Positions 7,100 to 55,579 of a stretch of DNA of 64,000 nt are shown one piece after another. Positions within the stretch are counted from its first letter, which is position 1, and the number at the start of each line of letters is the position of its first letter. This stretch comes from Blepharisma stoltei ATCC 30299. Lineage: Eukaryota; Protista; Ciliophora. Below the pieces are notes generated by a model, which worked only from the letters and a program-made list of their open reading frames with translations, did not search any database and was not told the DNA's origin. The stretch is from assembly GCA_965603825.1 (NCBI GenBank), contig CBFDEM010000038.1:1-64000 (forward strand). Reading direction: 5' to 3'. A program made the position numbers and the translations under genes.

Positions 7100-8480
7100 T
7101 CTAAAAATGGACCATATCTCTATAGTATTAAAAGACAAAGCTGAAAGCTCAGATATGAAGATTGGATATAAAAACTTTTGAGATTAACCGATAATTTCTT
7201 TGAACCTGTGAGCCACTTAGCAGAAGAGTATGCATAAATGAAATAAAGAACTTTGTTGCTATGGCAACGACAACCCTCGAACAGGATTTCATACATTATT
7301 GATCTAAAAACAATTACAGTAAAAAGAAGAGTTTTTGATGGAATTCCATGCTGTAATACAGTAGGCCTTTACTTCCAAAATTCAGTTTTCTTCCTGAGAG
7401 CAGCTTATGGGAAATACCCATGTACTCGCATGGATAAGTATGATTTAATTGAAGATAGATGGAAAAGTTGCTTAGTTTTCTGCAATGCAATGTTTAAATT
7501 ATGCTCCTGTACTGTCTTCAAAACTCTATCTTATTTCGTGCATTAAATTAAAAACTATTTATTAATTTGACATAAGTGTTAATAGCTGCTCCGAAATATT
7601 ACTTATCGAGGATTCAGTTAACCAATTTAAAATTTTATTTATTGTTTATTTAAGACTTATATAGCTGTAAAACAAATTGGCAAAATGTAGGGAAGCTTGA
7701 TTGTGATTCTGATCTGAATTATTGCCCATTTAAAAAATTTTTAAGGACTTTTACGTTCTGAGTTTTTCGATTATTTCAGCTTGAGTTGCAATAGGTTTGA
7801 CCTAATGAAAATTTTCTAAAACTCACTGATTTTTTCCAAATTTGGTTAAATTTTATCCAGGACTACTACAAGTGCCATATGAGGACTTCACAGTTATAGT
7901 AGAAAAGCTGACAAAGCTTGAAATTTATTCTGCTCAATCACGAAAAACGCAATTGAAAAGTTTTATCGAACAGCGGAAAGCCATTCAATATGCTAAAAAA
8001 TCTGCATTAAAGGTTCTATTTCTAGGACAAACTTTTTACTAAAATAAAACTCTGAAAATTCCAAAAATCACATTTATATGAGATGATATTTCAGCATTTT
8101 ACAAAGTTTGAAATCCAAAGATGACTTAATAAACTTAGAAAACCTGGCTAAATCTTGGAGGAGATCCGAATTATTAGCGATGTCTTGTTGATGATCCATC
8201 TTTTCAGCTAGCTCATCACGATTATATTAATACTTATCGCCTAAAAGCAACTCTTTATAATATTAAACAAGATAGCGATAGAATTAATTTTAATATCTAT
8301 GATATAGAAAATAAAAGTGAATAAATCAAGGAGGGAGACGTTCCTGAGCCTCTAGGCTATGAAACATGCATTTCTCAATTACCAAATGATAATTTATTTC
8401 CTATAGCTCTAATTCTGGGATTTTGTTGATAATGATGAGAATTATAGAGTTCTGCAGCTGCCATTGCCATTTCTCTTCAG
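7100..8480 (+). pseudogene. Two degraded fragments of the Kelch-like propeller family
   Basis: YFQNSVF...MDKYDLIEDRWKS (7253-7546). 8190-8460 aligns by eye to the linker and first blade of 9950-10220 (cctgagcctcta...tgcatttctcaattaccaaatg). Confidence 0.65.
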
Positions 8481-8669: not shown

Positions 8670-10763
8670 ATGGAGCTTATGCAATGTTTCGAGCAAGGGT
8701 GCAAGAACGAGGTTGAATACTCATGCCCATGCACATCTCCTGAAACTCTATCCTGCGTACAGCATATTGGGGAGCACATGAAACTTCCTAATAGAACTCA
8801 TGTTCCCAACTTCATTTTTGTAGAGCCATGCAAAGGGACAAAAGAAGAAATTCTTAAGTTTCTCACAAGAAAAAAATTAAAAAATAGCAAGCTGAAGGGA
8901 AAGATGCTAGCATCCTTTAGCAAGCGTTTGCTAGAATCAGAGGACGATATTGAAGAACTCTTAAAAAATTTGGATTCATATTCAGCTGAAATAAGTGATT
9001 ATTTGACAAAAATTTCTCAAGCTCAAAAATTATCAAAATCAGAGCAAGACCCGATTTTAGGATTATTGAATTTGCAACCTGATGAAGCTATTGAGAAATT
9101 AAAAAAAATTATTCCGACCAATCAAGAATGGTCCAAAAGTGCAAAGCTATTTTGTGCTCTCGGTGAAAAAATTGAAAAAACGATTGAGTGTATTATTGAA
9201 GACAAATTTGAAGCTTATTTAGATAAAAGACTGTCTAATGTAGAAAACACTCTTCAAGAGCACAGCAAAATTATTAAATCAGTCAATGAAGAGCATAAAA
9301 AGAGCATTGATTCAACGAACGATCAGATAGCAAACATCAAAGAATCTATTTCTAAACTAATAAATGAGAATGAAAAGAGCAAGAGAGACTTAAAAGACTG
9401 GAAAGAAGAAATAATGCTTAACACAAAAAATGAAATAGACCTGTCTAATTCTCAAATTATTAAAATAAATCAAGATAATGAAAAGAGCAAGAGAGACTTA
9501 AAAGACTGGAAAGAAGAAATAATGCTTAACACAAAAAATGAAATAGACCTGTCTAATTCTCAAATTATTAAAATAAATCAAGATAATGAAAAGAGCAAGA
9601 GAGACTTAAAAGACTGGAAAGAAGAAATAATGCTTAACACAAAAAATGAAATAGACCTGTTTAATTCTCAAATTATTAAAATAAATCAAGATAATGAAAA
9701 GAGCAAGAAAGACTTAAAAGACTGAAAAGAAGAAATAATACTTAACACAAAAAATGAAACAGACCTGCTTAATTCTCAAATTATTAAAATAAATCAAGAT
9801 CTCAGCAAAAGTTAATGAATTTCTAAAGTCTCAAAGCATTCAAGAGCTAAGAGAGAAGAGCTCTGAAATTTTAAATAGACCAAATGACCCAGAATTAGAG
9901 CAAGACTTTAGGAGAACCTGCTCAAAGTTCAGTAGCGATGTCTGTGTTGATCAGCAAGCTTATCAAGATTATACTAATGCTTATCGCCAAAAAACATCTC
10001 TTTATACAATTATAAAGAAAGACAACAGAACTAATTTGTTTATTTATGATACAGAGAATGATAGTAAAGAAGTAAGGATATTAGAGACTCCTGAACCACT
10101 GGATTGAAGCACTTGCATTGCTCAGCTTCCTAATGGTAATTTATTTTGCTTTGGCAATAACCAACCTTCTGGAGTTTCATTGATAATTGATGAGAATTAT
10201 AGAGTCCGGCAGCTGCCATCTGGAACTCCTTGTAGTGTTCATCAGCTATCTATTTCAATAATAGTCTTTATTGCTTTGGAGGATCAAAAGATTATAATAT
10301 TTTAACTCTATCAGAGAGATTTGATTTAAATGAAAACCGATGAATTAAATTAAAGCCACTGCCACAAGCTGATTACCTTTGCACTAGTGTAATATTTAAC
10401 GGGAATATTGTGATTTCTGGAAGGAATAATAAAAATCTTTTGAGGTATTCAATTGGTAGCAACACTTTCGCAACAATTCCTTATGATTTTCAAGCTAATA
10501 AATACAAGATTCTTATAAGTGCAGAGAGACTGTATTTAATTGAATGTGAAAATGGATCAATCTATGAAAGCGAATTGTCAAATGATACTGCCTGGAGACG
10601 AATTGGAGACTCAATAATAGATTATTTTTATCAAGTTTATTTGTCATATAATAAAGGAGGAATAAACATTGCAAACTATTATGATGTTAGTTATCCTATT
10701 CGTTACTTCAAGTTTAATTTAGAGACGAAAAGATTAACTAAGTTGGATGAAATAAGATTATAA
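8670..10763 (+). pseudogene. Zn-finger (B-box-like) - coiled coil - 36-aa repeats - Kelch-like propeller gene, two frameshifts
   Basis: N-terminus CFEQGC...YSCPC...LSCVQHIGEH, then coiled coil, then blades with YCFGG and RFDLNENRW (W = TGA). Frameshifts at ~9810 (+1) and ~10236 (-1) relative to paralogs. Confidence 0.85.
9369..9800 (+). repeat. Coding tandem repeat, 4 x 108 bp (36 aa, NEKSKRDLKDWKEEIMLNTKNEIDLSNSQIIKINQD)
   Basis: Units start at 9369, 9477, 9585 and 9693 and are near-identical. Unit 4 has TGA where units 1-3 have TGG. Confidence 0.95.
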
Positions 10764-10799
10764 TAAATAGGTCTCATTTAATAATCTTTTGCTATTAAC

Positions 10800-12864
10800 T
10801 CTTTCAATATCTTTTATTGATCAATCTGGCTTCTATTTTGTAGTGAAAATGTTTTTGTTAGGGATTTTTTTAAGCTGGTCAATTTATTTGACTCTTCAAA
10901 GTCTCTTTTAAAAGATATAAAAGTTTCTGAATAAACAATTTTGGGAGTCTATTGCATTATTTGCAAATTTTTTGACTTCATTTTTTCTCTTAATGAAATA
11001 GAGTTATAAAACTCATCAAGTCAGCTTGCACCGGTTTCATTAAGAATATCTAATTCCACTTTTAAATAAGAAGCAGTTTAAGGGGATTCAATAATTCTTT
11101 TATTTGCGTTATCTAAGATTGCATTAACGCAGTCTTTATGCTTACTCTTCAAACTTAAACTGAGGGGTCTTTGGTTTTGAATAGCAGCTGAAAATGGTCC
11201 ATCAGCTTTTAAACTTAGTGTCAAATGCTCTGCCAAATCTCTGTCAGCATAGAAAAGTAGAATATTTATATCGTATTTTGCTAGAAAAAAGTTATCCATC
11301 TCTACATCATGCTCTGGAGGGCCAGCTGTAAGCTGAGTAAATGCATTTTATCAATTTTCTTATTTTGCTTCGTTCCCCAAATATTAAAATTTTTTTAGTC
11401 GAAACAGGATTACCTAAAACAATTATTTTCTTGCTAGCTGCAACCACAAGGATAGAGTTGCTTGGCAAAGTAACGACAGGGCTGCATTTTTCATCAAAAT
11501 TCAAGCTTAAACAAAGAGAAAAATCCGATATATTTCATATTTAAACTTTTTCATCAAATGAAGACGCCATAAAATACTTGTCATTAATTAGCAAACTTGC
11601 AACTCTTTCTTGATGGTAAGAAATCTGCTTTAATTTTGCAAGGTTAAGTTCGTTATAGCCAAAGCTGGAGTTTTTACTCCATATCAGCACCAAACAGCCA
11701 TCTGAGCAAGAAATAAGCAGGGAGCAGTGCTTGGTGACCCTCAAGTCATTTATATATTTGGAATGAGCTTTCGCATATCAGTTTGGTCTATTCTGTACCC
11801 TATCATAGTGCACTTCCCACCCGAAAATAAAATATTAGTATGTCTAGGCTTGACTTCTAAGGAGGATTTCTCCACAAACTCAGCCAGTGCAATACATCTC
11901 ACACGAGAAGTATGAGCTTTAGTCTTTGCATTGGAGTCCTTAATTATTTATTTTCCATTGCCGAATCCAATGCCCTTTATGCTATGTGACTCATAACTTT
12001 CTCCATTATCTTCAAAGAATCATTGAGATCACTGCATCTTCATTTGAATTTCTTCAACTACTCTACTAGCACGCAAATCTGTTTTTATTAGCTTCCCACT
12101 TCTTGCAGCAATTGTAATTTCAGGATTGATGCCATTAGAAGAGAAATTTATTGACTTGAAGTGTTTTTATTCCCCTTTTCGAGAAAAATTGTGGAGATAT
12201 GTCTCTTTCATGCGGTCTTTATGGATTTTTTAACGCTTAATTGTTGCATCTCTGCTTGCAGTTACTGAAAGGGTTTGGAATGATAAACCTCAGACATTGT
12301 CATGCACCTTAAATAATGGCTTTATTATTTCAGCTTCAGTTACGTCATCTATACTGACTAATTCATTGTCATCGCCAGCTATTATATACAAGTTCTTGGT
12401 ATTTGTATAGGCTAATTTTTTGATTTTATCTAAAACTGGCGAGCCAACTTCAACCCTATCCTCCTTTATTTTGATTAAGCTGCTTTTTAGTTCAAATATA
12501 GTTATGGCGTTAATTCCAGAACAGCAAATTATATAAACATTGGTCTTTATCTTGCCTTATCATCATGAAATCTACTCTCATGTCAAGCGAGCAAGGCGTT
12601 ATTGCTGATTTTGAATGATAGACGGACTTATAATGTTTGTAATTCTGACTATTTCTTTACTTCTTGCAAACTCAGCTGTCCAAAATCGTTCTTCGGCATT
12701 TGCTATCACATATAGAAAATCCTTATAAGTTGTAAAACACAGATATTTTCCATCTGGGCTGAAAGCACTAGAATTCAAGAGCTCACCTATAGTGAATTTT
12801 CAGCCCAGGTGTTTTAGATCCATTTGGCATACCTTTCATCTCTAGGTTCTCTTGCTAAATCCAT
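10800..12864 (-). pseudogene. WD40-repeat protein pseudogene
   Basis: Fragments SAFSPDGKYLCF, VTASRDATIK, LISCSDGCLVLIW and SYHQERVASLLINDKYFMASSFDEKV in shifting frames. Confidence 0.65.
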
Positions 12865-26821: not shown

Positions 26822-29240
26822 ATGGAGATTTTTCCTGAAGAGTTAACAAAAGTTTTTACAGTTAAGGATCACTTGAATGGTGGATCTTATGGAACGATCT
26901 ATAAAGCCATAAAGAAAAGTAATTTTTATTTCAGGCAATGGAAAAATGTATGCAATAAAGGCTGTAGCCAGAGCTAACACAGAGCCAAGCTGGAATGGCA
27001 TTGAAGTTGATGTGCAACCGTCAAGCTGGAAGGATATTGAAACTGAGATGCAAGTGCTCTCATGGGCCAATCCATATAAGCTTCAACTAGACTCCTTTTT
27101 TGTTAAAGGCGACACTTTCTTCATGGTCATGGATTATTGCCGAAATGGCGACCTTCTTAAAGCCATAGTTGATAAGATTCATGCCCATGAAATGTTTGAA
27201 GAAGACGAAATCTGAAAATATTTTATCCAGATCAGCTTTGGGCTCGAGTCTTTGCACTATAACGGATTTATCCATCGAGATCTTCATCTACAAAATATCC
27301 TTTTAGATGAAAATAGAGATATTAAAATAGCTGATTTTGGCATTTCTCGCTATTTACAGTCAAATGCAAATAATGGAGTTAAGGCTTACTGGTCTCCTAG
27401 GACTCATAGTGGAGGTCTTCAGGCTAAAGAAAGCGATGTTTGGGCAGTCGGCTGCATTTTATATTATCTCTGCAACCTTGAGCATCCTTTTGGCAAAAAT
27501 AAGAATAAAATAAAATATGAGCCTCATAAGCCGATAAGAAGTGAATACTCGAATGATTTGAGGTATTTCGTTGATCGGTGCCTACAAAAGCAGCGAGAAG
27601 ATAGGCCAACAATAGTTGATATCTTAACTCATGAGTTTATAGTCAACAAAACACTAAGCTTAGGCATTACAATTCCACAAACATCTGCTATGAATGAAGC
27701 TATTCATAAAAAGGAAATTGAGTCGCTTAGAGCAGAAAATGCTCGCTTAAAGGTAATAAATGAAAATAAAAAGAGCGAGAAAGACCTCAAAGACAGGAAT
27801 GACGACCTGCTTAATTCTCAAAGAAATAAGATTCCTCAAGATCATATCAAAAATAATGAAGCAGAAAAAGCCCAAAAGATCCAAGAGCTAAGAGAGAAGA
27901 GATCTGAAATTTTAAATAGACCAAATGACCCAGAATTAGAGCAAGACTTTAGGAGAATCTGCTCAAAGTTCAGTACTGATATCTATGCTGATGACCCAAC
28001 TCTTCAGCAAGCTTACCAAGATTATACTAATGCTTATCGCCAAAAAACATCTCTTTATAAAATTATAAAGGATTATGAGAATAGGACTAATTTGATTATT
28101 TATGATACAGAAAATGATAGTGAGGAAGTCAGAATAGTAGAGACTCCGGAACCACTAGATTTTGGCACTTGTATTGCTCAGCTTCCTAATGGTAATTTAT
28201 TTTGCTTTGGTAATAGCCAACATTCTGGAGTTTCATTGATAATTGATGAGAATTATAAAGTTCGGGAGCTGCCATCTGGAACTCCTTGCGTTAACTCATC
28301 AGCTATCTATTTCAATAATAGTGTTTATTGCTTTGGAGGAAATTATAATTATGAAGATTTAACTCTATCAGAGAGATTTGATTTAAATGAAAACCGATGA
28401 ATTAAATTAGAGCCACTGCCAGAAGCTGATGAGAATTGCACTAGTGTAATATTTAACGGGAATATTGTGATTTCTGGATTTAATGAAAATCTTTTGAGGT
28501 ATTCAATTGGTAACAACACTTTCGCAGCAATTCCTTATGATTTTGAAGCTTATGTAGGCAAGATTCTTATAAGTACAGAGAGACTGTATTTAATTGAATA
28601 TGGTGGATCAATCTATGAAAGTGAATTGTCAAATGAAACTGTCTGGAGACGAATTGGAGACTCAATAATAGTTCTTTTTAATCAAGTTTATTTGTCACAT
28701 AGTAAAGGAAAAATAAACATCTCATTTTTTTCTATAAATGGTAGAGAATATTATTGTTTTGATTTAGATCAAAAAAACATTATTGATATCGCATTCTGTA
28801 GTGAGCATGTCTCGCTTAGAAGAGTAGGTAAAAAGATTGAAGCAAATAAATGAAATAGCCAGAATTTTAAGCTCGATTCTTCGTATCTGGATGAATGAAA
28901 TTTAAAAGGCAATACTCTGATCGATTTAGGAAAAAATCTAGAAGAAATTGAAAGATCTATCGAAGAATTAAAACTCTATCCAAACAATTATGATTCATAT
29001 CATAAAAAAGGTGACGCTTTTTATAATTTAGAAAGATATCTAGAAGCAATCGAATGCTATGACGAAGCAATCAAACTATATCCAAGTTATGCTTATTTTT
29101 ACATTGATAAAGGCAAAGCTTTTAAAAAATTAAAAAGATATCTAGAAGCAATCGAATGCTATGAGGAAGCAATCAAAGTCGATCCAGATGATGCTGATTT
29201 TTATTATACTTTATTCAAGCGATGCTGATTCTTACTATAA
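26822..29240 (+). CDS. NEK-like protein kinase - coiled coil - Kelch-like propeller - TPR fusion (further TPRs continue out of frame to 29649)
   Basis: ATG 26822 and a 16-nt intron at 26919-26934, then one frame with TGA=Trp. Motifs GGSYG, YAIK, EIWKYFIQI, HRDLHLQN, DFG and SDVWAVGC, then Kelch blades and TPRs. TAA at 29238 follows a TPR-unit deletion near 29208. Confidence 0.88.
26919..26934 (+). other. 16-nt spliceosomal intron GTAATTTTTATTTCAG
   Basis: Removal joins ...YKAIKK-S-NGKMYAIK in frame across kinase subdomains I-II. Introns of 15-16 nt are characteristic of heterotrichs. Confidence 0.92.
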
Positions 29241-29500
29241 TAAAGGGGATGCTTTAAATAAATTAGGAAGATACCAAGAAGCAGTAGAAAGCTATGATGA
29301 AGCAATCAGATGCAATCGATATAATTCCAAGTTATATAATGGTAAAGGCAATACTCTTTATGCTTTAGAGAGATATCAAGAAGCAATGAAATGCTATGAC
29401 GAGGCAATCGAACTTCAACCCAATAATCCTTTGTATTTCTGCAACCGGGCTAGAGTATTTAATAATCTCAGACAAGAAGAAGCAGCTTTGCAGGACTTTA
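28980..29500 (+). repeat. TPR-coding tandem repeat, 102-bp period
   Basis: aaagatatctagaagcaatcgaatgctatga(c/g)gaagcaatcaaa occurs at 29032 and 29134. Further diverged units run to ~29500. Confidence 0.85.
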
Positions 29501-29689
29501 ATAGGGCTTATAATTGGAATCAAGAATTATATAGTCGTGGTTTCACTGAGGATAAATGGGAAAGGTTGCTTTCTAAAAAAGAGATCAAATTTATTAACGA
29601 AGTATTAGGCCGAGACCGTATTGAACTACACCAAAAAATGCAGATTTAGAATAAAATTAGGTTTTAATAAGCCGTCATTATAATAATTA

Positions 29690-30126: not shown

Positions 30127-31209
30127 ATGGAACTTAAAAATTGAGATCAAGCCATCTTACTTAAATCAGCTAGGGAAGATCTCGATAACGAAACAAAAAT
30201 TGGCAATGCCAAGTCCAATCAAGATGCTAATCAATTAAATCCTCAAGAGTTAAATGGTAAATTTTCAAAGATCTTAAGCGGTGTCAATAATACAGAAATC
30301 GAACAAGATTTTAGGAAAACTTGCTCACTATATGAGAAACAAAATTATGAATCTGATATATTACTAAACAGGGCTTATCATGATTTTATCAGCTCTTATC
30401 ATCATATCTCATCCCTTTATCTCGTTCAAAGGGGAGATGATATCGATACTGATTTGATCATTTATGACACTGAAACTGAAACTGAGAAAACGATAGTCTT
30501 GGATTCTCCAAATCAACTAACAGCGAATGTATGCCTCATTCAACTTCCGAATGGCGAATTATTCTGTTTGAGTAATCTTTATTTAGCCCCTAGTAGTGCT
30601 CTGATAATTGGCATGACTTTTAAAACTCGAGTGTTGCCATCTGGAGCATTCAGGTATTATTCATCAGCTATATATTTCAATGGAAGTGTCTACTGCTTTG
30701 GAGGATATGATAATGTCAAAATTTTAAACTTTTCTTGCAGATTTTGCTTAGATGAAAACCGGTGAATTAAAATAACCCCAATGCTGATAGCTGATGCATG
30801 GTGCCATAGCGCTATATATAAAGGGAATATTTTGATTTCTGGATATAGATTTACACATATTTTAATATACTCACCTGAAATTGATTCTTTCTCTATAATT
30901 CCTTATGATTTTAAAGAATATAAGCGCAAGATCTTGATAAATTCAGAGAGACTATATTTAATTGAAGACAGAGACTGAGAAAGTTATGGATTTATTTATG
31001 AAAGTGAGATTGGAGATGAGTATACCTGGAAATGAGTAGGAGAATCAGTAGTTAGATATGCATATGATCAGGTATATTGCTCATATAATAAAGGAAGTAT
31101 TTATATTGGTTGCTTGGAGGCTGGGAATCCTGAAAAATTCTACTATAAATTTAATTTAAAAGAAAAAGTAATGATTGAGCTTAAAGAGGCTCAGGCTGAT
31201 GCTACTTAA
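30127..31209 (+). CDS. Intact stand-alone Kelch-like propeller protein (360 aa)
   Basis: ATG 30127 to TAA 31209 is open with TGA=Trp. It has the linker EIEQDFRKTC and blades QLPNGELFC, YCFGG and RLYLIE. Confidence 0.85.
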
Positions 31210-31329: not shown

Positions 31330-32220
31330 TCTTAGCCAAGATCCTGCAAATAAAATATTTTTTCAAGATCTTTCAGCAAAAAGTATCTGCAATTTGAAGC
31401 AGAGCTAATGACCCAGAAACAGAGAAAGATTTCAGAAAAACTTGCTTATGATATGAAAGCCAAAGGTCTACTTCTAATCTTTCATTAAAACAAGCTTATG
31501 AAGAATATCTTAGTGCTTATCATCAAATCACTTCTATTTACAATATTTGAAATGATACCAGCAGAACTTATTTGTTTATTTACGACTCAGAAAGCGAAAG
31601 AAAAAGCACAAAAGCACAAAATCACTGGATTCATCAATTTCATTAGACCACGGTAGCTGCATTGCTCTACTTCCAAATGGAAAATTATTCTGTTTTGGTA
31701 GGCATCATCTGCATTCAGGGATCACTTTTATAATTGATAAAAATTATAAAGCTAAACGATTACAATCTGTAGCACCTTGCTGCTTCTTATCAGCTATTTG
31801 TTTCGACAAAAATATTTATTGCTTTGGAGGATTAGATATTAATAGCATCAGTATGGCTCTATCTTATAGATTCGATCTAAGTGTCAATCGATGAATTGAG
31901 CTAGTCAAAATGCCTCAAGCTGACTGTCATACCAAAATATTTAATAGGAATATTTTGATTTCTGGGTATTATAATCAGCACATTCTTATGTACTTGATTC
32001 CTTTTTAGTAATCCCATATGAATTTTCGTTTTGTAAAACAAAGATCATTATAAATGCAGAGAGATTGTATTTGTTTGAGGGCGGAATAGAAGGGAAAATC
32101 TATGAGAGTGAAATAGAAGATGAATATAATTGAAATCTGGTAAAAAAATTATTGAAATGCTGGTTTTAGTGATGCCTAAATTTATTATTTATATAATAAA
32201 GGTTGAATATATATATTAAA
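31330..32220 (+). pseudogene. Kelch-like propeller family pseudogene
   Basis: aatgacccagaa...gatttcagaaaaacttgc linker, LPNGKLFCFG, YCFGG and RFDLSVNRW, with frameshifts. Confidence 0.8.
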
Positions 32221-54643: not shown

Positions 54644-55579
54644 AAACTCAAAGAAATAGAAAGCAGTTTAAAAATTATAAATACCTTAAGAATTAAGACA
54701 GCTGAGATTTTGAGCAGACCAAACAATCCAGAGTTAGAGATGGATTTCAGAACAACTTATTCAGCATATCAGAACAATTCTAATATCGATGATCAATCGC
54801 TAATTCAAGCTTACCAAGATTATCATAATGCTTATCAGCAAAAGACATGCCTTTATAATATTATACGAGAACACAAGAGATCTATTTTAATTATTTATAA
54901 CACTGAAACTGAAACCCAAGAAATAAAAATCTTGAAGACTTCGCAACCAATAGACCAATGAACTTGCGTAGCTCAACTTCCAAATGGTAAGCTATTCTGT
55001 TTTGATCATCGTCGAGTTTCTGGAATTGCAGTGCTAATTGATATGAATGGCGAAGTCAAAGTGTTGCCATCTGGAACTTCTTGCAAATACTCATCATGCA
55101 TCTATTTCAACAACAGCGTCTATTGCTTTGGAGGATTTTCTAATCGTTTTTTAACTCTATCTAGTAGATTTGATTTATATCAAAATCGATGAATTCAGTT
55201 AGCTCCAATGCCAAAAGCTGATGAAACGTGTAATAGTGTAATATTTAATGGGAATATTTTGATTTCTGGATATAGAAGCAAAAATCTTTTTTTATATTCA
55301 ATCGATATTAACTCTTTCTCGACGATTACTTATGAATTTGGAGCAATCACAAGAAAGGTTCTGATAAGTGCAGAGAGACTGTACTTGATTGAATTCGGTG
55401 GATCAATCTATGAAAGCGAAATTGGAAGTTACATGAATTGGAGACGACTAGTAGACTTAACAATCATAAATCCCAGTCAAGTGTATTGTGTATATAATAA
55501 AGGAGGAATATACGCTGGATTAGACAGAGACCATTACTTCAAGTTTGATTTGAATGAGAAGAAATTGATTGCTTTATAA
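54644..55579 (+). CDS. Kelch-like propeller ORF; domain intact, upstream coiled-coil region degraded
   Basis: Open frame 54644-55579 with TGA=Trp; first ATG at 54740. Linker RPNNPELEMDFR and all blades present. Confidence 0.75.

Follow-up and report, generated by a model that had tools for sequence, protein, structure and literature searches.

Hypervariable loops on the conserved framework of a Kelch propeller family from Blepharisma stoltei: a candidate recognition repertoire

Introduction

TRIM proteins, such as TRIM5alpha with the v1-v4 loops of its SPRY domain and the expanded finTRIM family of fish, possess a C-terminal recognition domain, the surface loops of which are positively selected. 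In fungal NLRs of the HET-E/D/R type, a few hypervariable, selected positions lie on the binding face of a propeller or solenoid, and recombination acts together with selection. Thomas is said to have reported in 2006 that the F-box and MATH-BTB adaptors of nematodes and plants expanded under positive selection. The variable lymphocyte receptors (VLRs) of lampreys and the complementarity-determining regions (CDRs) of antibodies form repertoires that are assembled or mutated somatically. The WD40, tetratricopeptide (TPR) or ANK repeats of the fungal receptors show high internal conservation (PMC11761791), Kelch-F-box families occur in plants (PMC13262408), and the Keap1 pocket that holds the motifs of Nrf2 is made up of D-A and B-C loops (PMC12314335). 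Little is known about the intracellular recognition of microbes, symbionts, and viruses by free-living ciliates. We herein describe a family of Kelch propeller proteins from the ciliate Blepharisma stoltei ATCC 30299, several members of which, including a kinase-type gene (gene B), are encoded in a stretch of 64,000 nucleotides at a chromosome end. The family belongs to none of the TRIM, fungal NLR, F-box/MATH-BTB, and KLHL/Keap1 groups, which are its closest analogues in working.

The whole 64,000-nucleotide stretch (assembly GCA_965603825.1, contig CBFDEM010000038.1, positions 1 to 64,000), referred to as the window, is an end of a somatic chromosome with CCCTAACA telomere repeats, located on contig 38 of a genome assembly of 41.46 Mb (64 contigs); this assembly and the CCCTAACA repeat have been covered in the genome paper of B. 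stoltei (PMC9942806). The protein relatives were annotated as Blepharisma stoltei. In-frame TGA was found as Trp in the public proteins (NRwI in the translated open reading frame (ORF) and NRWI in the public protein), and translation was performed with genetic code 4 (TGA = Trp). Domain searches were run on stop-free pieces of the window genes or on public proteins; P0001, an uninterrupted paralog with 79% identity to copy B (the propeller copy of gene B) over the linker and first blades, was used for Pfam searches and structural modeling.

Results

Patches of replaced sequence on a near-identical framework

The original prediction, made from the DNA letters of the window, described long identical stretches between propeller copies A and B interrupted by short replaced patches, and this pattern was reproduced by our alignment (9850-10800 against 27897-28860). 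Identity between 10081-10670 and 28138-28720 was 88.9%, with 68 differences (span 28138-28720), and these differences were significantly clustered: the variance/mean per 12-nucleotide bin was 2.17, vs at most 1.76 in 20,000 permutations. The longest identical run, 53 nucleotides, was not unusual by itself (p about 0.10). All nine of the quoted peptide pairs were present (WS/FG, NQP/SQH, frameshift/VN, SKDYNI/NYNYED, YL/EN, RNNK/FNE, NKY/YVG, CEN/YG, and DYFY/VLFN), as were the variants quoted for the copies starting at 30127 (YDNVKI, AW, and YKR) and 54644 (FSNRF, ET, and ITR). On the other hand, the estimate of about ten copies or fragments in the window was too high: we found four essentially full-length copies (A, frameshifted by a 1-nucleotide deletion near 10238, B, C, and E), one degraded copy, and two fragments.

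A whole-genome DNA search yielded 42 matches among 171 candidates, 14 of them with 84-90% identity to copy B. When 15 copies from across the genome were aligned, each had its own sequence in the same approximately eleven patches, often with insertions or deletions (indels), and the DNA between the patches was almost invariant, including the third codon positions.

Kelch fold and position of the variable patches

The assignment to a Kelch-like propeller, also proposed previously, held in the protein analyses. P0001:372-670 passed the Pfam cut-offs for Kelch_6 (28.6 vs 25.3) and Kelch_1 (21.1 vs 20.1), and 63 of the 105 family proteins matched Kelch_6 at an expectation value (E) of 1e-4 or better; the window's own stop-free pieces gave sub-threshold Kelch matches only, because in-frame TGA splits the motif. 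The AlphaFold2 model of P0001:372-670, constructed with a 30-sequence family alignment (predicted local distance difference test (pLDDT), 94.2; predicted template modeling score (pTM), 0.90), contained two linker helices and 23 strands, the latter forming a three-strand N-terminal blade and five four-strand blades. The best solved matches of this model in Foldseek were the six-bladed Kelch domains of KLHL20, Keap1, KLHL3, and KLHL12: template modeling (TM) scores of 0.67-0.71 and sequence identities of 11-17%. A GG doublet with the aromatic/Trp pattern was clear in blade 2 (YCFGG...NRW) and degenerate elsewhere (FCFGN, ISG, and IE.G). Pfam on the uninterrupted protein and the predicted fold together identify the domain as a Kelch propeller (Pfam clan CL0186), in which the segment HVSLRRVG may possibly be the closure strand, as judged from its conservation. 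The two-helix linker, which was kept across the 30 members aligned, preceded the propeller in all family members.

The strands of the model were transferred onto the family alignment in order to place the patches. Every hypervariable patch corresponded to a D-A loop (from strand D to strand A of the next blade) or a B-C loop, and the A-B and C-D turns were kept (PNG, DENY, NN, NENR, NG, and so on). Among the 46 propeller columns with an entropy of 2 bits or more, 34 were in D-A/B-C loops, 2 were in A-B/C-D loops, and 10 were in strands, several of the last being at strand ends beside D-A/B-C loops. The same columns varied in both of the subfamilies defined below (Spearman, 0.61). Since alternate loops of a four-stranded antiparallel blade emerge on the same side, all of the patches are placed on one face of the modeled propeller, to which hypervariability is confined, a placement made from strand order and topology rather than measured solvent exposure. 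The variable codons were not scattered, and their predicted positions, in the loops preceding strand A and following strand B with its GG motif, agreed with those found.

Amino-acid-changing divergence of the loops

To avoid a circular choice of sites, hypervariable columns were called in one subfamily and measured in the other: subfamily 1 consisted of eight kinase-type or close copies, and subfamily 2 of twelve copies at a greater distance, most of which were of the TPR type. At these cross-validated sites, the ratio of nonsynonymous to synonymous divergence (dN/dS; Nei-Gojobori) was 2.0-2.8, vs 0.5-0.74 in the framework, and the dN of hypervariable columns (0.62-1.2) was about 3.5-6.6 times the framework dS (about 0.18). 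GY94 maximum likelihood estimates of dN/dS (omega) in subfamily 1 were 2.16 for 30 columns (likelihood-ratio test against omega = 1, p 0.02; framework, 0.65) and 4.01 for 57 columns (p 3e-8; framework, 0.48), and that in subfamily 2 was 1.5 (p 0.10 and 0.03; framework, 0.53-0.61); the tree length of hypervariable columns was 5-9 times that of the framework. When the columns were divided by structure, the top loops as a whole had an omega of 0.96, compared with 0.51 in the bottom loops, 0.62 in the strands, and 0.50 in the linker. The excess of loop dN was also present where neither a column nor its neighbors contained gaps (0.51-0.71, vs 0.18-0.24 for framework dS). These values bear out the hypervariable loops on a fixed framework of the original prediction and strong selection, one of the three origins that it offered for them; the divergence of the loops goes far beyond the neutral rate.

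The proportion of synonymous differences (pS) by Nei-Gojobori was unreliable at saturated loop codons, and a comparison of codons for the same amino acid was used instead: same-amino-acid pairs differed in codon at 0.10/0.16 in hypervariable columns vs 0.09/0.13 in the framework. Framework pS was 0.13-0.14 adjoining hypervariable codons and 0.16-0.19 six or more codons away. In the youngest pair, L010/L011 (framework pS of 0.05), 10 nonsynonymous and 2 synonymous changes were found in the loops, and appeared in the DNA alignment as scattered one- or two-base changes. Along kinase-type genes, pS was flat (0.14-0.18), and the ratio of nonsynonymous to synonymous proportions (pN/pS) was lowest in the kinase (0.39) and highest in the propeller (1.01), with the linker (0.56) and coiled coil (0.63) between them. 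The excess in the loops was specific to nonsynonymous change, with omega above 1, and purifying selection acted elsewhere in the gene. Because the synonymous rate in the loops equals that of the framework, the loop excess points to positive selection, not hypermutation.

Partner modules and chimeric genes

From 26822 to approximately 28720, gene B was similar to the kinase-type copies (86-93% identity over most of the stretch), and after approximately 28720, in the last propeller loop, it switched to TPR-type relatives (mostly 78-89%). The finger and coiled coil of copy A were nearest to L004, L002, L007, and L013, and from approximately 9714, at the border between coiled coil and linker, its nearest relative was the kinase-type L005 (94%). 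Both genes are chimeras by these best-match profiles, and recombination at this larger scale is clear, with partner domains swapped around a common propeller. The swappable partner domains inferred in the original prediction were also evident in the different architectures of family members: kinase, coiled coil, and propeller; U-box, coiled coil, and propeller; Cys/His finger, coiled coil, and propeller with or without a TPR array; and linker with propeller alone. A kinase domain was matched in gene B (Pkinase; E of 4e-30 on piece 27216-28397, with a weak N-lobe match on 26913-27212), and a U-box (E of 2e-19) was found in two sampled members, P0020 and P0032. For the coiled coil, long helices were predicted at low confidence, and its sequence was heptad-like and rich in K/E. 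BTB was matched by none of the window genes and by none of eight N-terminal regions, nor did it appear among the 25 most frequent Pfam families of 105 members; neither BTB/BACK nor NACHT/NB-ARC was found in the Pfam tables obtained for family members, nor RING among the Pfam results for sampled N-termini.

Finger-type members are headed by the motif C-x4-C-x7-C-x-C-x7-C-x2-H-x3-H (8670-8850 of the window, and the N-termini of P0007, P0009, P0012, P0013, and P0024), which is conserved, matches no zinc finger of Pfam, and may be an undescribed zinc-binding module. The first 60 residues with this motif did not match zf-B_box even at E up to 10. A "B-box-like/TRIM" label for the finger module was dropped: no B-box or RING was found, and the AlphaFold2 model (pLDDT of 44) was unusable. 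The coiled coil of copy A (approximately 9369-9915) contains approximately three tandem copies of a unit of approximately 36 residues (NEKSKRDLKDWKEEIMLNTKNEIDLSNSQIIKINQD), a repeat that its relatives do not have.

The TPR arrays of many family members (28899-29646 of the window, and L019-L030) were composed of near-identical 34-residue units, with average DNA identity of 77%, and up to 97%, within one gene. Helix B of the unit (RYLEAIECYDEAIKL) was fixed, and variation was found at helix-A positions 1, 2, 5, 6, 9, 12, and 13 and at loop positions 31, 33, and 34; the helix-A positions are the usual ligand-contact positions of TPR grooves. The array is a second module with a fixed framework and variable contacts in the same proteins.

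Size, location, and lineage of the family

When the genome was searched with a profile, at least 135 copies were scored among 642 candidates, and many of these copies lay in tandem clusters. Twenty-nine of the 135 (21%) were within 15 kb of a contig start, vs an expected 2.3% (about ninefold; p 9e-20). In a library of 1.84 billion representatives, 132 clusters (50% identity) matched at E of 1e-30 or better, and 20 single-domain matches sampled from this library comprised 18 from B. stoltei and 2 Logan-derived proteins. These sequence searches indicate a large, subtelomere-enriched family that is so far essentially found only in B. stoltei, and the several truncated or frameshifted copies fit birth-and-death turnover. 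One of these two Logan-derived proteins, P0115, was traced to a contig of run SRR24908292; it is a more distant Kelch protein without the linker. On a Logan contig of that run, from a gene-dense eukaryotic assembly, L031:6001-7314 encodes a 437-residue Kelch protein (propeller profile, E of 4e-37) that lacks the linker and is a possible relative in another organism. As stated in the original prediction, no description of the family was known; none was found in the Blepharisma genome papers or in full-text literature searches.

Short-read contigs ended at loop borders (loose ends at 28341 and 28360) and continued into the loops of other paralogs. Short-read assemblies will fragment or collapse the family, because contigs are interrupted at the framework that the paralogs have in common and branch there into other paralogs.

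Gene B and other features of the window

The coordinates of the copies and of the parts of gene B are listed in Table 1. The ATG of gene B is at 26822. An intron of 16 nucleotides (GT..AG; 26919-26934) is located in the N-lobe of the kinase, and its removal restores AIKKSNGKMYAIKAV, as in P0001; at the same site, the paralog L009 has a 15-nucleotide version, read through in frame as NFYSG. Because a 31-nucleotide duplication shifts the frame, the ORF stops at 29238-29240 and most of the TPR array is lost; the out-of-frame remainder (29221-29646) was 86-89% identical to TPR-type paralogs. At the outer end of the window, the run of CCCTAACA telomere repeats was unusually long (more than 2.4 kb, from position 1 to at least 2400), with imperfect units scattered near the outer end.

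Table 1. Coordinates of propeller copies and of the parts of gene B in the window
Feature	Position	Strand	Remarks
Two short family fragments	7268-7522 and 8187-8399	+	
Copy A: Cys/His finger, coiled coil with internal tandem repeats, linker, propeller	8670..10760	+	Frame broken
Gene B: kinase, coiled coil, helical linker, Kelch propeller, three TPRs	26822..29240	+	Code-4 ORF
Ser/Thr protein kinase domain of gene B	26858..27641	+	Pfam Pkinase
Two-helix linker (RSEILNRPNDPELEQDFR...QAYQDYTNAYRQKT) before the propeller	27900..28049	+	AlphaFold2 helices 11-27 and 32-49
Predicted six-bladed Kelch propeller: N-terminal three-strand blade, five four-strand blades	28050..28829	+	P0001 model mapped onto copy B
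Hypervariable patch: B-C-type loop, N-terminal blade (IK.YEN)	28065..28082	+	Entropy in both subfamilies
Hypervariable patch: end of D-A loop before strand A of blade 1 (FG)	28161..28166	+	
Hypervariable patch: B-C loop, blade 1 (NSQH)	28212..28223	+	
Hypervariable patch: D-A loop before blade 2 (VN)	28290..28295	+	
Hypervariable patch: B-C loop, blade 2, right after the GG doublet (YNYEDLT)	28344..28364	+	Length differs among copies
Hypervariable patch: D-A loop before blade 3 (EN)	28431..28436	+	
Hypervariable patch: B-C loop, blade 3 (FNE)	28479..28487	+	
Hypervariable patch: D-A loop before blade 4 (EAYVG)	28545..28559	+	
Hypervariable patch: B-C loop, blade 4 (YG)	28599..28604	+	1-3 extra residues in other copies
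Hypervariable patch: D-A loop before blade 5 (IIVLFN)	28665..28682	+	Same variant in L009 and L013
Hypervariable patch: B-C loop, blade 5 (FFSINGRE)	28725..28748	+	Also the kinase-type/TPR-type switch point of gene B
Three in-frame TPR repeats	28899..29225	+	Pfam TPR_1, TPR_11, and related; E of 1e-15 to 1e-18
31-nucleotide imperfect tandem duplication (GATGCTGATTTTTATTATA... / GATGCTGATTCTTACTATA...)	29190..29220	+	Read from the sequence
Out-of-frame TPR remainder and C-terminal tail	29221..29646	+	Pfam TPR_1, E of 1e-22 in that frame
Copy C: short N-terminus, linker, propeller	30127..31206	+	Intact ORF of 360 amino acids
Degraded propeller copy over three frames	31389..32148	+	
Copy E: linker and propeller	54644..55576	+	ORF of 311 amino acids

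Discussion

The overall reading that we favor, with a probability of roughly 0.7, is that a young, fixed scaffold, the loop face of which was diversified by selection, has been shuffled among modules to form a candidate recognition repertoire. The constant core would be the two-helix linker with the six-bladed Kelch propeller, in a lineage-specific, subtelomere-enriched family. The scaffold (the strands, A-B/C-D turns, and linker) would be young (synonymous divergence of about 0.15-0.2) and under mild purifying selection, and the tips of the D-A/B-C loops would have been replaced repeatedly under diversifying selection, by amino-acid-changing point substitutions and small indels, such that the binding surface may differ from one paralog to the next while the scaffold stays the same. 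Through ectopic recombination, with exchange points in the linker and the last loop, the propeller would be joined to a kinase, a U-box, a Cys/His finger with a coiled coil, or TPR arrays. We infer that the propeller serves as a variable module of target recognition, on which the attached kinase, U-box, or scaffold relies: the propeller (and TPRs where present) would pick the target, and the attached effector would phosphorylate, ubiquitinate, or scaffold it. The targets would be numerous or fast-evolving, such as microbial, symbiont, or viral proteins or cues of self and non-self, and the family may thus have a receptor, non-self recognition, or substrate-adaptor role.

Several points weigh against this reading. 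Six D-A codons of fixed length were near saturation in both pS and pN (pS of 0.55-0.58), and loop indels may align non-homologous codons, thereby inflating dN and dS. In subfamily 2, the support for omega above 1 was marginal (p 0.03-0.10). Some members of the family may be decaying, because framework omega (0.5-0.65) was high, several copies were truncated or frameshifted, and gene B was without most of its TPRs. Furthermore, the location on one face was derived from strand order and propeller topology, not from geometry, and the structure was modeled on a paralog with approximately 79% identity (linker and first blades), not on copy B.

Three other explanations for the contrast between framework and loops were considered. 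The loops may be old and kept distinct by selection, with a framework that looks young through subtelomeric gene conversion, and some recombination was indeed detected: 51% of informative site pairs were incompatible, genes A and B are recombinant, and loop divergence jumped from 0.09 to approximately 0.4 between framework pS of 0.05 and 0.07. The pairwise homoplasy index (PHI) test was significant at windows of 10 (p 0.0015) and 5 (p 0.04) informative sites, but not of 20, and a GENECONV-style scan gave as its best shared fragment 28668-28718 in L009/L013, which includes an identical RSDLD loop (per-pair p 0.002), whereas no fragment survived correction for 91 pairs. The patchwise gene conversion proposed previously was weakly supported by these sequences; it may contribute to the loops and is neither needed nor the main signal. 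However, the conversion tracts of such concerted evolution would need to end at the same codons in every copy, with only 40-70 nucleotides between loops; moreover, loop codons for the same amino acid differed as in the framework, and pS did not rise beside the loops. We consider this explanation to be unlikely. An origin without any adaptive process, in which unconstrained, indel-prone loops and misaligned codons mimic divergence on a recently duplicated scaffold, agrees with the different loop lengths, with the high pS and pN in loop codons, and with the omega of 0.96 over all top-loop columns. Nevertheless, neutral loops cannot outpace the silent sites of the framework, and loop dN was several times framework dS (3.5-6.6 times), an excess also found in gap-free columns; cross-validated maximum likelihood omega was 1.5-4.0 (p as low as 3e-8), and the equally exposed A-B/C-D turns were conserved (omega of 0.51; 2 of the 46 highly variable columns), making this explanation quite improbable.

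The loops may also be written by a program, i.e., by a mutator, a template cassette, or developmental rewriting when the somatic nucleus forms. The borders of the patches were very sharp, loop codons were close to saturation, and ciliates extensively edit their genomes (PMC9942806). Against this, the variation lies between fixed paralogous loci of one assembly, the synonymous rate of the loops was not raised, and no mutation gradient was observed. The targeted rewriting that had been offered as one option previously found no support, and the youngest pair differs by single-nucleotide steps. Assembled contigs of four runs from three studies matched the loops of copy B with no alternative letters or indels listed, a weak point since contigs drop rare variants. 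No donor cassettes were seen, although no search was made for a template repeat or reverse transcriptase. Programmed diversification is, in our opinion, scarcely credible.

A cytosolic, germline-encoded repertoire of hundreds of sensor-effectors, similar in kind to families of innate immune or allorecognition receptors, in which the Kelch face and TPR grooves detect bacterial, symbiont, viral, or conspecific proteins and the kinase or U-box acts, is put forward here tentatively, as a possibility that we regard as somewhat doubtful. If the reading as a recognition repertoire is true, ciliates would thereby gain their first described system of this kind. A 41-Mb genome gives more than 130 genes to one scaffold, the putative ligand-binding face of which is rewritten by selection, at fast-evolving chromosome ends and in connection with kinase and ubiquitin-ligase modules. 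The family may also represent a ready-made set of Kelch binders, all built on one constant scaffold that was modeled with confidence. Its current annotations are generic: "unnamed protein product", "Uncharacterized protein", and "Kelch motif family protein", among others.

A comparison with known systems reveals partial similarities to each. Lamprey VLRs and antibody CDRs also combine a fixed scaffold with variable binding loops; however, the Blepharisma variants are separate germline-type paralogs, and no sign of somatic change was found. The Keap1/KLHL adaptors of cullin-3 share the six-bladed Kelch propeller, and the ligand loops of Keap1 (D-A/B-C) are the loops that vary here. On the other hand, the Blepharisma propeller is fused to a kinase, a U-box, a Cys/His finger with a coiled coil, or TPRs, with BTB/BACK not found, identity is 11-17%, and more than 130 lineage-specific paralogs with hypervariable loops stand against conserved orthologs.

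TRIM proteins, with their N-terminal ligase/zinc module, coiled coil, and C-terminal recognition domain with selected loops, resemble the family, in which the coiled coil is putative, and also share its multigene expansion. They differ in that RING/B-box was not detected in the Blepharisma family, Kelch replaces SPRY, and many members carry a kinase, not a ligase. Fungal NLRs share a near-identical DNA framework with hypervariable, selected binding positions, although their within-gene pattern has a counterpart in the TPR arrays only: the blades within one Blepharisma propeller are dissimilar, conservation of the propeller being between paralogs, and NACHT/NB-ARC was not found. F-box and MATH-BTB adaptors differ in that the Blepharisma U-box or kinase is in the same chain, the family is ciliate-specific, and the contrast between scaffold and loops is much sharper; they show the same lineage-specific birth-and-death expansion with selection in the substrate-binding domain, and an immune role has been proposed for them. 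The genomic signature of the Blepharisma family, as in plant and fungal NLRs, TRIMs, and the nematode F-box/MATH-BTB adaptors, suggests a candidate immune-like or self/non-self system in an early-branching ciliate.

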